IMG/VR virus record: IMGVR_UViG_3300026097_000876
Coordinates: 1-64,000 of that record
Reading direction: 5' to 3' (one strand)
DNA: 64,000 bases
The translations under genes and the position numbers were made by a program. The notes below the pieces were generated by a model. It was not told the origin of the DNA and did not search any database. It saw nothing but the letters and a program-made list of their open reading frames with translations. Shown one piece after another: positions 1,322-11,011 of the stretch. Every line of letters starts with the position of its first letter. The first letter of the stretch is position 1.

Positions 1322-1355
1322 TTAAAAAACCCCGGAGTATTTCTACTTCGGGGTT
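1322..1355 (-). terminator. Intrinsic terminator (part of putative attenuator)
   Basis: AACCCCGAAGTA-GAAA-TACTCCGGGGTT followed by U run. Confidence 0.8.
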
Positions 1356-1381
1356 CCGTATAATCTGTTAACTTAACTAAA

Positions 1382-1480
1382 CTATACGGAACTCCCACGA
1401 TCATAAATCCAACCACAGAACATCCCCGCCGGATTCGACTGGACCTCTGTTGTGTTCTTATGCATCGTTTTGTTCATCAT
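1382..1480 (-). CDS. Putative 32-aa leaderless leader peptide MMNKTMHKNTTEVQSNPAGMFCGWIYDRGSSV
   Basis: ATG 6 nt after the -10 hexamer; stop codon lies in the 5' arm of an antiterminator hairpin. Confidence 0.55.
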   Translation of the reverse strand: MMNKTMHKNTTEVQSNPAGMFCGWIYDRGSSV

Positions 1481-1486
1481 AGTGTT

Positions 1487-1516
1487 ATATTAACCTCGTT
1501 GACTCTGTTTGTCAAC
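1487..1516 (-). promoter_or_regulatory. Sigma70-type promoter with overlapping GTTGAC-N7-GTCAAC palindrome
   Basis: TTGACA-17 nt-TAATAT; dyad at 1498-1516. Confidence 0.65.
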
Positions 1517-1937: not shown

Positions 1938-1950
1938 TTTTCTCTCCAAA

Positions 1951-1978
1951 TGAGTAGTTTTAAAACTTACTCAGGTTT
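1951..1978 (-). ncRNA. Small H-type pseudoknot motif, copy C
   Basis: S1 AAAC/GTTT, S2 TGAGTA/TACTCA; ends 3 nt before the RBS of the next gene. Confidence 0.55.
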
Positions 1979-2200
1979 ACCTTTCCTGGGCACCATTTGC
2001 TCAATTGTTTTACAAGGGGAACAAAACCCTTAAAAATTTTTACACAATGCAAAGAGTGAGTGGTTAACCAATGCATCGACCTAGCTACTTGATAAACTAT
2101 GTCTATCTTTCACTACTTTCAGGCGGTTCAGGCCTTTATCGCCGTCTCCCTAAGGAGCTTGTGTCTAGGTCTTTTTATAGTAGTACCGAATCTACATATT

Positions 2201-4793: not shown

Positions 4794-5588
4794 TTATACC
4801 TTGTATAGTTTTACATAGTTAAGACGTGTTTCGTCTGCGCTGAACATACGATTCTTTGTATGCGACTTTACTTTAGCTTTAAGACGCTTGCGAGCACCTA
4901 CAGCGTGTTCGTACTTGTTCATGAAGCTAACTAGGTTGCCGTCAACTACACCTACGTAGTTGTAGCTCTCCCACTGACTGCTGTAACGCTTGTCCAGTAT
5001 TTCAATTACACCTTCTACAGTTGCGCCAACAGGCTCAATGTGACGGCTGTCACGGTACTCAATACGGATAGTTTTTGTAAGACTTGCCTCGTGCTGATCA
5101 CGTGCGATAAACTCCGGAGCAAACGCAATACGGCCCATGCTCTTAACCGCTACTTGGTCTTGCGACAGTTCTTTAACCATATCTACCTTGAAGCTGTCCA
5201 GCTCACCCAAGCCCAGCATCACATAACGCTTCATCCACTTGCGAGCCTCTTCTACACTAGCATAGTCTGCTTCAGTAGGTTCAAACATTTCAAAGTCTGT
5301 AGGAAGATACTTTGCGTCAGCAGTGTCCAACTTCTTAGCCCAGTAGAAACGCACAAGACTCTTATTGTCAAACTGTGTCTTGTTGTCTTCTGAGAAGCGA
5401 CGAGTGTCTTTGGTGTAAGTGTTGCCGTTGATGCGATATACTGCATACGCTACAGCAAGTGCGTCTGCTAGACTTACCGTTTTCAAAGGAACAGTTCTGT
5501 AAGATTTGTTGTGACTGTGCTTTAGAGCTTCGTCTTCGTGACGTAGTTCAAATGCAATTTCATCTTTTTTGAATTGTGAAAGTGCCAT
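4794..5588 (-). CDS. Hypothetical early protein
   Basis: Own TTGACA/TATACT promoter at ~5614-5640 and AGAGG RBS. Confidence 0.7.
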   Translation of the reverse strand: MALSQFKKDEIAFELRHEDEALKHSHNKSYRTVPLKTVSLADALAVAYAVYRINGNTYTKDTRRFSEDNKTQFDNKSLVRFYWAKKLDTADAKYLPTDFEMFEPTEADYASVEEARKWMKRYVMLGLGELDSFKVDMVKELSQDQVAVKSMGRIAFAPEFIARDQHEASLTKTIRIEYRDSRHIEPVGATVEGVIEILDKRYSSQWESYNYVGVVDGNLVSFMNKYEHAVGARKRLKAKVKSHTKNRMFSADETRLNYVKLYKV

Positions 5589-5630
5589 GTGTGCCTCTAT
5601 ATTTGCCTAACTGTTATATAAAGTATAGTG

Positions 5631-6101
5631 TCAGAATACAAGATTGTCAAGTGTTTCTTTTAGAAATTCAATTTCTTCTTTGTTGTGCTTCCAAGCAAAT
5701 CCGCGGCTTTTAAATAGTCCGAGGCTAGTGTCTATATCATAAACCTTGCCAAAGCTATTGGTCATATTTTCGCTACTAGTTGCTAGGATAGTGGTATCGT
5801 TGGCACGATAGAACTGCCACCATTCGTTGCACTCCATCAATGGACCATCTAGCATAGTAGTATAAGTTTTATGTCGATCTACCAAATGACTACGGTTGAT
5901 ACCCATGCGACTTACTTTCTTATAACCATGTTCAGCAAACACACGTAGGGCATCTTCGGTAATTCCTATCACTTGCCAATGGTCAGGACATAGCGACAAT
6001 AGCTCTCCTAGCATACGAGCCCGTTTACTAGTTGGTGCTCGCATATTGCGAATTAGCAAGTAATCGTGATATAAATCTTCTTTGTTCACTTTTGTGTCCA
6101 C
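5631..6101 (-). CDS. Hypothetical protein
   Basis: 156-aa ORF in the operon. Confidence 0.6.
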   Translation of the reverse strand: MDTKVNKEDLYHDYLLIRNMRAPTSKRARMLGELLSLCPDHWQVIGITEDALRVFAEHGYKKVSRMGINRSHLVDRHKTYTTMLDGPLMECNEWWQFYRANDTTILATSSENMTNSFGKVYDIDTSLGLFKSRGFAWKHNKEEIEFLKETLDNLVF

Positions 6102-6496
6102 TTCAAATGGCTAAGACGTTCTTGTTCGCACCAACGTATAAACAAACCTGTTTCACGCCCGTGTGCTTCAATCTCACTTGGCTTATCCCAATAGTCATAT
6201 TCGCTTTCGCTGCCTTGGTCAAGTTCGCCTAGCACGTATTGCTTTACGTGTACCATTTCGTGTGCTAGTGTAGTGAGCATATCACGCATGCCTAGTGTAC
6301 GCTTGAGTTCAACTTCAAACTCGCGATCATCTACGTGACAGCAATAACCGTAGGTTTCATCTTTGCTCATCAGGCGAAGATTGATTTCTACAGTAAGATT
6401 CTTGTGTCGAGGAAGGAATTTGTTAACACAAAAGAGTGCCATGCTTTCTGCATACTTCTTTTGATTGCGTGAACCGCCTGATACAATAATTTCCAT
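6086..6496 (-). CDS. HExxH zinc metallopeptidase-like protein
   Basis: TLAHEMVHVKQY...EIEAHG; own promoter at ~6530-6558. Confidence 0.75.
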   Translation of the reverse strand: MEIIVSGGSRNQKKYAESMALFCVNKFLPRHKNLTVEINLRLMSKDETYGYCCHVDDREFEVELKRTLGMRDMLTTLAHEMVHVKQYVLGELDQGSESEYDYWDKPSEIEAHGRETGLFIRWCEQERLSHLKWTQK

Positions 6497-6554
6497 GTGC
6501 GTCTCTGTGTTTGCCTAACTGTTATATACAGTATAAATTCGTCCGGCAAAAATG

Positions 6555-7712
6555 TCAAGACTTTTTAAATATATAAATGCCTTCACTTTTGTATGCGTTT
6601 TTTAATTTGTTGTTGCCAGTTCCAGGACGGACGTTTAGTAACATATCTATCTGTTCTACATAGTCAAATCCAATTTTTTTACTAACATCCTTCCAGCGAT
6701 CTACAATTTTAAATTCTTCCTTGCCGTCCTTGTAGTCTGCAATATTAACAGCATACAGGCTTTCTTTTGCAAGAGCTGTGTGTAACATCTTAACAGTTGG
6801 CTCTACGTAATTATCAAACCATTCGTCTATTGTGCTACAATTGTTCATACATTGTGTATCTTCATCTGTGTATGTTTCTAAGTTAAAGTAAGGGGGACTA
6901 CTAAATGCGGCATCAAAAGAGCCCGGCTCTGGATCAAAGTCTTCACTAGGCATATGATTCATATCATACCCAGATCCAAGTCCTAATTCTTTCATTAGTT
7001 CGCCTAACGCAACTAACCCGTTGTAAGTTTTTGTATTCGGATCAATTCCTGTATAATGATAACGCATGTTACTAGTAAGAGATCCAATCATTCTTCCACC
7101 GTAGCCAGAGCTAAAATCTAGAACATTACCAAACATTTGAGGACAGATATACTCATACACAGCTCTAGCATTCATAGGTTTAAAGTTTGCAATAGTGCCT
7201 CCGCTTACAAGATCTAATGCTCGACGTATGTTTTGAGGTAATACACTTTTTTCGCCTTCATCTCTATACTTGTAGCAAAAGCTAATAGCACGTTTCAAAC
7301 GAGTGTCATCATAAAATCTTGCTCGCATACTAACCATTTTATCTTTACGAGTGTACGCTTCCTGCATATTAGGAAACCAAAAACGACTGAAAGTTTGTCC
7401 TGCGGTATTTCCTACAGCTATCTTTTTGTCTTTTACTTCGTGTGATTTTTGACTAATTGCTGTTAGTTCTTTTTTACAGCCTTCGAGTGTAAAGTAAGTA
7501 ATAGGAATAACGTTTACGCTTCTGTAAATATTAAAAACATCTTGTACAATTTGATCTCGACCGTTGTCATCTGCTTTGTTCCAGCGATCTTTAGTATAAG
7601 TCTTTAATTGTTCTTCCACACTTTCATAACCAGAATAAGAATCATTAGTCGGTGTCACATTCCATTCTTTACAGATATGATTGTAGTAATTTTCAATTAA
7701 AGTGTTTTGCAT
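6555..7712 (-). CDS. SAM-dependent amino-DNA methyltransferase (SPPY, N4-mC-like)
   Basis: Motif I VLDFSSGYGGR, GIDP, motif IV FSSPPYF. Confidence 0.85.
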   Translation of the reverse strand: MQNTLIENYYNHICKEWNVTPTNDSYSGYESVEEQLKTYTKDRWNKADDNGRDQIVQDVFNIYRSVNVIPITYFTLEGCKKELTAISQKSHEVKDKKIAVGNTAGQTFSRFWFPNMQEAYTRKDKMVSMRARFYDDTRLKRAISFCYKYRDEGEKSVLPQNIRRALDLVSGGTIANFKPMNARAVYEYICPQMFGNVLDFSSGYGGRMIGSLTSNMRYHYTGIDPNTKTYNGLVALGELMKELGLGSGYDMNHMPSEDFDPEPGSFDAAFSSPPYFNLETYTDEDTQCMNNCSTIDEWFDNYVEPTVKMLHTALAKESLYAVNIADYKDGKEEFKIVDRWKDVSKKIGFDYVEQIDMLLNVRPGTGNNKLKNAYKSEGIYIFKKS

Positions 7713-8868
7713 ATATTTCTTTTACCTGTTCCTTGTGCTTGTAATGTGGAATTTTTGACCAAAACCCTGTGCCGTTTGCCGGACTAGTTTCATTTAGACT
7801 TAGCACTAATCTTGTAATTTCTTTGCTATTGTAGTAATTAATTATTTCTTCTGCTTCTTGTTTGTCTTCAACCTGAATCCAAATTGCATTATGTCCAGTT
7901 CCGTATTCTGGACTAGCATATTTTAGTGTGCTCTTAGTATTTCGATTACCATTCTTACTGATAACAACTTTGTGTACACCAACGCCTTCACGGGGTGTAA
8001 TAATGCTTTTGTCTACACCAACTGTTTTCCTAAAGTCAGCGCCTTCAGTTCCTACTTGATAGATTAGTTGCACATCGCCGGGATTGTTAATAATTTTTTT
8101 ATCGTTGATATAATATGATCCATAATTTGCTGTAAATGTTTCAAAATTCTGTTCGAACAGTTCTTTCGCAAACATATAGGTCTTCAAATCAAATGCTGGA
8201 AGATATGTAGGATTATCAACAATAACACTAGTGTCATCCGTAATAAACTCTACACTATTATTTGTTTTTGCTGTGAAATACATAGCACAAATCGGTGTGG
8301 TAGTTTTAGTTACTCCTAAGAATCTATATTTTGTAATTTCTCTTATGTGTTGTTTCTTGGTGTAACGATTTTTATTCGGACGGGTAAGGACCAGTACGTG
8401 GTCGCATGTTTCTTTAAACTTGGATACAAAACTATTTGTTGTTAAAAAGTCTATAGCACTTAATACTACAGTATGTGAAGATTGAACGTCAATATAATCT
8501 TGTTGCAAAACATTCACATTAAATGTTTTATTGTTTAGTGCTTTTTTAAAATTAGTCTTACAAACTAATGTTTGTAAATTATCAATATCACTTGCATATA
8601 ATTGGTTACTAAAAATATGTTCGATACGTTCAATTTCGTCTGGAATAGCTGGCGATAGCGTAGACATTAAACGTTGAGCAAGATACATTAGTAATGTTCC
8701 ACTACCACACTGTGGATCAAAATATGTAGTAGCAGGATCCGAAAGTAAACTATTGTCCAATAAGTCAATTGCATTCTTAGCAAATTGTTCTTCAATAATA
8801 GTTTGTGATCCGCTACTGTCGTATGCTTTTAATTGTGCAAGACGATTGTTTATATTATTGATGGTCAA
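7693..8868 (-). CDS. N6-adenine methyltransferase-like protein with degenerate catalytic motif
   Basis: Motif I FDPQCGSGTLL and YASDID; expected NPPY position reads SAIDF. Confidence 0.65.
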   Translation of the reverse strand: MTINNINNRLAQLKAYDSSGSQTIIEEQFAKNAIDLLDNSLLSDPATTYFDPQCGSGTLLMYLAQRLMSTLSPAIPDEIERIEHIFSNQLYASDIDNLQTLVCKTNFKKALNNKTFNVNVLQQDYIDVQSSHTVVLSAIDFLTTNSFVSKFKETCDHVLVLTRPNKNRYTKKQHIREITKYRFLGVTKTTTPICAMYFTAKTNNSVEFITDDTSVIVDNPTYLPAFDLKTYMFAKELFEQNFETFTANYGSYYINDKKIINNPGDVQLIYQVGTEGADFRKTVGVDKSIITPREGVGVHKVVISKNGNRNTKSTLKYASPEYGTGHNAIWIQVEDKQEAEEIINYYNSKEITRLVLSLNETSPANGTGFWSKIPHYKHKEQVKEIYAKHFN

Positions 8869-11011
8869 AGTATTGTCCTAACGCTCGATTTGCTGAAACA
8901 GTGTTTATAGTATTCATTATACTTGACCATTCGTCAGTTGTCAATCCCGTAACTTGTGCTACAATGCCATTGTCTATATTTGTTACATCTTGTATCTTGT
9001 CAAATTCAAAGTCATTAGCCCAAGCAATGTCTGCTAGTTTATAAATCTGTTTTAAACTATAGCGAATACGTTGCATAGTTACATTTAACTCATCCTCATC
9101 TCTAGCTTCAGGTTGAGCCGAATTTGTCTTAGAACGTGTTTTATTTTTGCCTTCTTCAATATCGTTAGCATTAAATTGTGTTCTGCTACTATTACTATTA
9201 GCGTCTTTGTTTTTATCTTGTAACAGTGCAATAATGTTATCATCAATTTCATTTTGTTTAATACAAGATCCAATGCGATCAATATGGTTGGTAATATCTG
9301 ACAGGAAACGTTTTGAAATTTCTGCACCTGACATAATGTTCCATGCATTACCGTCATAATCATATACATCGCTTACTTCTAACCATTCACTAATTACTGA
9401 TTCAGCGGTACGTCCTGTAGTGTCTGCAACACGCTCGCAATAATCGTACACTACACTAACAAAACGTTCAGGCGCATAATCAAATACTACTACACTTTCT
9501 TTTCCGTCTGCCGGCGACTTACAACGGAAACTACCTTGAAAGTAATCTGCCGCACTCTTGTCGTTATTAATTTGATGTACACTCCACCATTCAGGTACAG
9601 TAGTGCCTTCTAAGAAGCGTCCGCATGTGAGTGTAATAGTGCCGGCGCCACCGTCATGGTCGTTGCGAGAAATTATATCTTTTACTTTTTGTATATTCTT
9701 AACGCCTTTTCCACTTGCATTAATAATCTTACGTTTACAAAAGAACGGATGTGCTTCTAATGCTTGTGCAAATAACCCAATTGCTTCCACGTTATCAGGC
9801 AATACAAATAGTGTATGACGGCTAAGTTTGTCAGCAACATTACTAAATCTTGATGGTGGTTTTTTAAAGTTTTTCATAATAAATGTAATAAACTCATTTA
9901 CACCCATTACATTTTTAAAAGAACCATTTTCAGTTGCAAACAATTTAGAAAATGTAAATCCTTCGTCGCCGAGTAGCTGTTTTACTTTTTCCGGAACATT
10001 AACTAATGCATAGTTGATGTCAGCACGTTTGCGAAACTGATCTGTTAAGAAGTTGTCTTCGTTTGCTTCTAAAAGTTCTTTCCGTATATTTTGTTCGTCG
10101 ATATAATCAAAATTATATGTATCTTCTGAAGCGTATCGTCCACTTAGCATAGTCTTGTACGGAGTTCCGCTTAATTCAACTTTAAGTTTAAATTTTAGAT
10201 TACTCCAAAGACGTTGTGTGTTGTCGGTTGATGTAGCATAATGTTGTTCATCAAAAAATACACTGTCCCATTGTGTGTCAAACATTTGTTTTAAGAACTT
10301 ATTATTACTACCAAAATGTTTATTGATAAACTGTAAACTAACAAACACAACATCAGTGCCTGTAAATTCCAAAGACTTAGTTGTTTTATAGTTGTGGTAT
10401 TTCCAGCCAGCATAGTCAATGTGGTTCTCTTCTCCACCCGGCAATAAACTTGCCCAACTATCATTAACACCTACTTTTGCTGTAACTACTAAAATTTTCT
10501 TAGCACCAAGTGCTCGTGCAATTTCATAGCTAATACGACACTTACCGGCTCGCATAATAGCATTTATAAGCAAGTCACTAGATACCGAACTACGAGTTAC
10601 GGCCCAGTCGATAATGTCTTGTTGATAATCAAAACTATTCCAATCTTCTAGAGCTTCTACGCCATTAATAAGACCGTTGAGTACTTCTCGAACTGTTTTA
10701 CTAGCATCCTTTGCTGTTATGCTGTCAGGAAAATCAAACCATTCACGGTTCTTATCGTCGCGACTTTTAAAATAACCTTTGCGTTGGAGAGTTTTATGTA
10801 ATGCAATATCAGTAATATGCGTAGGAACTTGTCTTGAATAAATTATTTCTAATTTTTCAGAATTCGATGTGCTATCTTGTTGCTCAACCCGTTCTTCTGC
10901 TGTAAGCATAGTCTGTCCAACTTTAAGTTTTACATTGAAAACTTCACCGTCGACTGTTGCTACGCTTTGTTTGCTTTGACTTTTTGTAGTGTAAAGATAG
11001 ATTGTGTTCAT
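8855..11011 (-). CDS. T5orf172/GIY-YIG-like domain fused to SF2 (Res-type) helicase
   Basis: IYLY...KVGQT...REWF N-terminus; MRAGK, FFDEQH, LSGTPY, FLEGTTVPEW. Confidence 0.8.
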   Translation of the reverse strand: MNTIYLYTTKSQSKQSVATVDGEVFNVKLKVGQTMLTAEERVEQQDSTSNSEKLEIIYSRQVPTHITDIALHKTLQRKGYFKSRDDKNREWFDFPDSITAKDASKTVREVLNGLINGVEALEDWNSFDYQQDIIDWAVTRSSVSSDLLINAIMRAGKCRISYEIARALGAKKILVVTAKVGVNDSWASLLPGGEENHIDYAGWKYHNYKTTKSLEFTGTDVVFVSLQFINKHFGSNNKFLKQMFDTQWDSVFFDEQHYATSTDNTQRLWSNLKFKLKVELSGTPYKTMLSGRYASEDTYNFDYIDEQNIRKELLEANEDNFLTDQFRKRADINYALVNVPEKVKQLLGDEGFTFSKLFATENGSFKNVMGVNEFITFIMKNFKKPPSRFSNVADKLSRHTLFVLPDNVEAIGLFAQALEAHPFFCKRKIINASGKGVKNIQKVKDIISRNDHDGGAGTITLTCGRFLEGTTVPEWWSVHQINNDKSAADYFQGSFRCKSPADGKESVVVFDYAPERFVSVVYDYCERVADTTGRTAESVISEWLEVSDVYDYDGNAWNIMSGAEISKRFLSDITNHIDRIGSCIKQNEIDDNIIALLQDKNKDANSNSSRTQFNANDIEEGKNKTRSKTNSAQPEARDEDELNVTMQRIRYSLKQIYKLADIAWANDFEFDKIQDVTNIDNGIVAQVTGLTTDEWSSIMNTINTVSANRALGQYFDHQ

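Follow-up and report, generated by a model that had tools for sequence, protein, structure and literature searches.

A small unit consisting of a predicted promoter, a short open reading frame, a hairpin and an intrinsic terminator lies at the head of the tRNA gene arrays of a few uncultured phages. It is conserved as a sequence feature and is built like a translation-sensing switch which could set how much of the array is transcribed, although this function is inferred from sequence alone; we regard it as a plausible, but unproven, leader-peptide attenuator. The unit was examined in a window of 64,000 nucleotides (positions 1 to 64,000 of the 261.8-kb IMG/VR contig IMGVR_UViG_3300026097_000876) and in six further distinct versions from other uncultured-phage contigs, which are 69–80% identical to the window. 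An earlier note, made from the sequence alone, had described the promoter, ORF, hairpin and terminator, and had proposed that ribosome stalling upon tRNA depletion would switch on the phage tRNAs. Its observation is confirmed, all elements being present on the minus strand, while its interpretation is only partly supported by the comparison of the seven versions.

Anatomy of the leader unit

The promoter (1535–1487, minus strand) comprises an A-rich upstream stretch, a -35 hexamer TTGACA (1515–1510), a 17-nt spacer and a -10 hexamer TAATAT (1492–1487). It is of the sigma-70 type and belongs to a class, TTGACA-17-TANNNT, found 17 times in the window against 1.4 expected, and nearly always co-oriented with the genes. 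Six bases downstream of the -10 hexamer comes ATGATG at 1480, preceded by T, with the A sitting where a sigma-70 polymerase would normally start. No Shine-Dalgarno sequence is present, whereas the other promoters of this class are followed by 20–35-nt leaders with GGAG-like motifs or by RNA genes; this is the only one of the class with an AUG at the predicted +1. Leaderless initiation is only a prediction. The ORF (1480–1382) has 32 codons followed by TAG (1384–1382). The last codons and the stop lie in the 5' arm (1392–1379) of a hairpin, here called hairpin 2 (1392–1353), whose 3' arm (1366–1353) abuts a strong intrinsic terminator (1353–1324). The latter, CCCCG-A-AGUA-GAAA-UACU-C-CGGGG plus six U, has its stem at 1353–1330 with a GAAA loop and its T tract at 1329–1324, folds at -15 kcal/mol and occurs once in the window. 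The whole transcript folds far better than shuffled sequences (z = -4.9).

Several details of the earlier description required correction. The hairpin core is 13–14 bp rather than 11 bp, and it then extends through a bulged A by GGG:CCC, the GGG being that of codon 29. The note had the hairpin sequestering AACCCC at the start of the terminator; there are only four C's, the first of which (1353) is shared by both structures, and in the minimum-energy fold the hairpin core and the terminator coexist. Only the extension of the hairpin by the G-run at 1396–1392 (GGGAG) competes with the terminator, at -27.0 against -29.9 kcal/mol, and this extended state is the fold of the nascent RNA before the 3' arm of the terminator exists. 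Finally, the argument that the peptide uses all seven amino acids of the downstream tRNAs is a window-edge artefact. The window starts at a contig end inside the array, with the first seven tRNA genes at 716–18 (minus strand); a 100%-identical 40-kb contig, L004, continues (5133–9501) with ten more (Asp, Glu, Ser, Gly, Phe, Lys, Ile, Val, Gln and Arg), a 62-residue ORF between tRNA-Gln and tRNA-Arg, and a serine hydroxymethyltransferase-like gene. There are thus 20 tRNAs in all, three upstream of the element and 17 downstream.

Search for homologs

GenBank phages contained no record resembling the region apart from tRNAs. The neighbouring ORF of 106 residues, which carries a signal peptide, gave only identical copies plus a 63% relative in another context; about 250 nt between tRNA-Leu and this ORF (1950–2200, minus strand) have no called gene and no Rfam match. 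The nearby 2OG-Fe(II) oxygenase led to phages at 65–75% protein identity which share the ClpP, WYL and oxygenase gene order but have only 4–5 tRNAs and no element. Three of these (contigs L013, at 9024–9113, L014 and L017) carry a tRNA called by ARAGORN as tRNA-Ser with anticodon ACT, which is unusual. The 32-residue peptide had no exact match on record, and the ESM Atlas gave noise only. A scan of the genome collection with the hairpin pattern returned only chance inverted repeats, and two viral scans with the start of the ORF returned chance hits (contigs L090 and L091).

The first lead came from aligning contigs of public sequencing runs with the window. In two of these, X1 and X2, a relative keeps 1214–1531 at about 97% identity (with two substitutions in 1410–1531 and three gaps in 1214–1435), yet lacks 498–1213, has adjacent tRNAs (191–497) that are only about 87% alike, and is unlike the window upstream. 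Its terminator has the inner 3' arm GCAA, as in contig L101 (below). This points to recombination or transfer of the unit as a cassette. A scan with a block of the spacer downstream of the terminator then found L043, a 155-kb phage contig from the same sample as the window and about 80% identical to it. The 90-residue gene upstream of the element in L043 led to contigs L092/L093, L098/L099 and L101, and a further scan led to L103. Together with the window this makes seven distinct sequences, of which only about five are independent and which come from a few samples. The single sequence alone is weak evidence that the arrangement is more than chance; the six homologs make it strong.

Conservation of the unit

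Both promoter hexamers (one version has TACTAT), the 17-nt spacing, the A-rich stretch and the 6-nt gap to ATGATG are kept in all seven versions, while the spacer sequence is replaced. The ORF is open in every version (32, 34, 33, 33, 33, 34 and 33 codons), whereas the other two frames hold one to four stops. There are at least three length changes, and every length difference between conserved anchors is three bases; a 2-nt indel does occur, but in the non-coding loop of the hairpin. The peptide is only weakly constrained, with pN/pS about 0.5 between the window and the rest and about 1 within the close group, as expected if translation matters more than the product. Its consensus is MMNKTM.IIKP.NQPTVAGSFCGW[YN][NY]DR[HD]GGSV. 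The body of the ORF has no convincing conserved fold (89.9% paired against 87.3% in shuffles), and the frame is therefore best explained by translation. No tRNA model hit the ORF region, which does not support its being a decayed tRNA. A small hairpin inside the ORF (CC.GUCG-AAUC-CGGC.GG, 1442–1425) is nonetheless conserved, with six pairs, 97.6% paired and one compensatory pair, and is followed by the invariant block GUUCUGUGG (1421–1413); we infer that this might be a polymerase pause signal. The sequence TGGTATAAT, found inside the ORF of some homologs and considered as a possible promoter, is not conserved in the window, L098 or L103.

Conservation of the ORF-plus-hairpin geometry in related phages had been set beforehand as a test of the proposal, and it was found. 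The UAG is always at the same place in hairpin 2, which has 13 pairs, is 100% paired in the seven sequences and shows four compensatory pairs and three wobble changes; none of 500 shuffles reached the observed values. In L103, three consecutive pairs next to the stop were replaced on both sides while the UAG stayed. The five G-C pairs at the base of the terminator and its T tract are invariant, and it occurs once per locus, so it is not a generic repeat. The G-run, which is the candidate antiterminator strand, reads GGGAG in the window and GGAGG in the other versions, and in both forms one A bulges and four G's pair with the four C's of the terminator, although this is the only informative substitution pair. 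Across the versions the extended state lies at -25 to -27 kcal/mol against -28.3 to -29.9 for the terminator state, a difference of 2.5–3.4 kcal/mol, and the nascent RNA always folds to the extended state. In the full-length L043 transcript the two states are about equally populated at equilibrium.

The region between the terminator and the tRNA genes

Every version lies directly upstream of a tRNA array, of 6 to 18 genes as far as the contigs reach. In L092 (1858–2418), L093 (1791–2351) and the contig of a related phage, L094 (3579–4112) (opposite strand), an HNH endonuclease gene sits inside or beside the array, in L092/L093 between tRNA-Trp and tRNA-Asp, which suggests homing-endonuclease traffic that may explain the mosaic make-up of these arrays.

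Downstream of the terminator is a structured spacer (1323–1223) with hairpins A (1265–1242) and B (1239–1223), comprising 11 pairs, 100% paired, four of which have changes on both sides. Variants in a further public run, X3, also compensate. This shows that the region is a functional RNA on the same strand. Related copies occur on their own, at about 86% identity, in other contigs of runs X3 and X4, and it may therefore be an independent RNA module; there is no Rfam match. Next comes an 18–19-bp A/U-rich helix closing a variable insert (window 1221–1121, minus strand, with the helix formed by 1221–1204 and 1139–1122; L043 8665–8745; L101 690–735; L103 60–125). In the window and L092/L093 the insert is a tRNA-like domain with a perfect 7-bp acceptor-like stem and a canonical T arm, which ARAGORN and Rfam do not call a tRNA. 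In L043 and L098 the domain is shorter, and in L101 and L103 it is only a loop. Perhaps this is a processing site or a decoy RNA.

The earlier note had cautioned that a second promoter downstream might express the tRNAs independently. Such a promoter, TTGACA-17-TATACT (1120–1092, minus strand), is present 181–204 nt after the T tract in the window, L092/L093 and L098/L099, and L103 has a weaker promoter-like site, CTGACA-17-TATAAT, inside the helix. No consensus promoter was recognized between the terminator and the tRNAs in L043 and L101, and the relative in runs X1/X2 lacks the stretch that holds the second promoter of the window. In those lineages the spacer RNA and the tRNAs have no recognizable promoter other than that of the leader, so polymerase would have to pass the terminator. 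Three promoters of the TTGACA-17-TATACT class (window 1085, 5615 and 6523, minus strand) share the same first transcribed bases (AACAGTTAG), two of them leading into protein genes and one into the non-coding RNA region. The motifs CACTTATTATAAAG and CACTWTAAAAAATAAATG, examined as possible markers of a phage promoter class, are not enriched in the window, and the second lies within a stretch deleted in L101 and L103. After the second promoter of the window (1085–720, minus strand) comes a roughly 170-nt RNA domain closed by a 24-bp helix (about 1074–1051 with 925–902), and then further structured sequence before tRNA-Asn. Parts of it (930–1074) recur at about 95% identity in contigs of runs X3 and X4.

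Composition of the peptide

The window peptide holds 19 of the 20 amino-acid kinds, all except Leu, so that containing any seven of them is nearly automatic. The chance of 19 or more kinds in 32 residues is 0.008, and 8 of 1582 real 32-residue windows of this phage reach it; the chance of holding all 17 kinds of the downstream tRNAs, as it does, is about 0.002, and that of holding no Leu is about 0.1. The homologs hold 17–19 kinds and never Leu, and no tRNA-Leu was found in the arrays as far as they were seen; in the window it lies upstream of the element. Since the sequences are related this amounts to about two observations, not seven. There is no run of repeated codons, the conserved F-C-G-W block having one codon each. 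At the codon level, no significant preference was found for codons read by the phage tRNAs (22 of 28 against 65% expected, P = 0.09).

Functional interpretation

We propose, with a probability of roughly 0.45, that the unit is a translation-coupled transcription attenuator at the head of the main tRNA array of the phage. In this view, host RNA polymerase would start at the A of the AUG, giving a leaderless mRNA which is translated while it is being made. As the RNA emerges, hairpin 2 would form and its G-run extension would pair with the four C's that the terminator needs. A ribosome that has reached the last codons or the UAG would cover the G-run and the 5' arm, leaving the C-run free, so that the terminator forms and the transcript ends at 1324. 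If the ribosome is absent, late or stalled before about codon 24–26, the extended hairpin would persist and compete with the terminator, and more polymerases would read on into the structured spacer, the helix-enclosed tRNA-like RNA and the tRNA genes. The small hairpin at 1442–1425 and the block GUUCUGUGG might be a pause that lets the ribosome catch up. The output would be more tRNA transcription when translation is slow. Our analysis establishes the promoter footprint, the maintained frame, the stop inside a covarying hairpin, the invariant terminator, the conserved two-state energetics, the functional RNA downstream and the position before tRNA arrays, whereas the start site, translation itself, termination, the geometry of the ribosome footprint, any regulated read-through and the physiological signal are inferred.

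Against this model, there is no Shine-Dalgarno sequence in a phage whose other genes have one, and there are no tandem regulatory codons. The competing structures share only the four C's plus AAC, and the terminator state, being about 3 kcal/mol more stable, could displace the extension quickly. No clear anti-antiterminator sequesters the G-run, so an untranslated leader would read through by default. The second promoter in the window and in two other lineages can express the tRNAs independently, the amino-acid variety drops to 17–18 kinds in some homologs, and the case rests on few independent sequences and no RNA data.

A bolder reading, which we consider doubtful but not excluded, is that the ORF is a general sensor of tRNA sufficiency, a leaderless leader peptide which samples nearly every amino acid once and never contains Leu; no tRNA-Leu gene was found in the arrays it heads, as far as they were seen. 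Any shortage of charged tRNA, whether from codon mismatch with the host, host shut-off or anticodon nucleases, would slow the ribosome, keep the antiterminator and switch on the phage's own tRNA array. This would be the first ribosome-mediated attenuator known to control tRNA genes, and a phage feedback loop on translational capacity. The link to tRNA-cleaving host defences, which the earlier note had also drawn, is speculation.

Alternative explanations

The best surviving alternative, though unlikely, is an autonomous small gene whose 32–34-residue micro-protein has its own role, with the position before the tRNA arrays being linkage only and the tRNAs being made from the second promoter, from unrecognized promoters or from constitutive leak through the terminator. 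In its favour are the maintained frame, the conserved C-terminal half (AG.FCGW..DR.G.S.) and N-terminal MMN.T, the unit's own promoter and strong terminator, and the second promoter or promoter-like site that follows in the window, L092/L093, L098/L099 and L103. However, pN/pS is 0.5–1, the middle of the peptide is freely replaced, and no protein look-alike was found. This reading does not explain why the stop is locked inside a covarying hairpin, why the G-run keeps its pairing to the C's of the terminator, or how L043 and L101 express the covarying spacer RNA and the tRNAs without another promoter. The promoter-less lineages argue against full termination.

Less likely still is a constitutive partial terminator, ending transcription from upstream genes and letting a fixed fraction through, with hairpin 2 and the 18-bp helix as double-strand RNase sites or 3'-end protectors that release the tRNA precursor, and with translation of the ORF having no regulatory effect. 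In the window the terminator also lies downstream of the unit which starts at the promoter at 2455–2427 and holds tRNA-Ser, tRNA-Leu, the 106-residue ORF and tRNA-Gly, and in the other phages it follows protein-coding genes; moreover, the long helices are conserved and the terminator state is thermodynamically favoured. This does not explain the dedicated conserved promoter 25–60 nt after the upstream gene, the AUG at the predicted +1, or the in-frame-only length changes. Least likely is a trans-acting small RNA of about 157 nt with a conserved single-stranded 5' seed and an incidental ORF, or with two functions as in attenuator-derived rnTrpL (PMC6614838), since, although the first 18 nt are nearly identical, the terminator with its U tail is invariant, the middle is variable and the transcript folds well, all length changes are in frame, no stop has arisen in seven versions and the body has no well-supported conserved fold.

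Comparison with known systems

As in the leader-peptide attenuators of amino-acid operons (trpL, hisL, pheL, thrL, leuL), there is a promoter-proximal short ORF, a stop codon placed so that a terminating ribosome would cover the 5' strand of an alternative helix, an intrinsic terminator before the putatively regulated genes, and an alternative pairing that takes the 5' arm of the terminator. It differs in that those genes are tRNAs and the element is in a phage; clustered codons for one amino acid, a defining feature of that family, are absent, nearly every amino acid occurring once or twice instead; the AUG is predicted to be leaderless rather than preceded by a Shine-Dalgarno sequence; and the switch has two states with a short overlap and no clear 1:2 helix. 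No Rfam family, leader families and T-box included, had a hit in the element at E ≤ 1 in the window, apart from chance microRNA-like matches to the hairpin, or at E ≤ 0.1 in three homologs.

Leaderless polycysteine short ORFs attenuate operon expression in mycobacteria (bioRxiv 10.1101/834739), where a leaderless short ORF at the 5' end of a polycistronic transcript acts as the ribosome-based sensor for downstream genes. [quoted passage not shown] T-box riboswitches likewise have a leader with terminator and antiterminator alternatives that ties gene expression to tRNA status, but they bind uncharged tRNA directly and need no translation, while the present element carries a maintained ORF. Phage tRNA arrays that replace tRNAs destroyed by host defences (PMC11555353) supply the context, namely large phage-encoded tRNA sets whose expression matters when host tRNAs are depleted; that work concerns which tRNAs phages carry and how they evade defence. 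Our literature searches found no leader-peptide control of phage or bacterial tRNA genes.

Significance

Little is known of how phages time and dose the expression of their tRNA sets. A leader of only about 200 nt, with a sigma-70-type promoter, that reads translation speed and gates a tRNA array would be a simple homeostat for translational capacity. It would link phage tRNA expression to tRNA loss, including loss caused by host defences, and would extend leader-peptide attenuation from amino-acid operons to RNA genes. Even if read-through proves constitutive, the conserved module of promoter, predicted leaderless ORF, terminator, covarying spacer and helix-enclosed tRNA-like RNA is an undescribed organizing element of these tRNA arrays.
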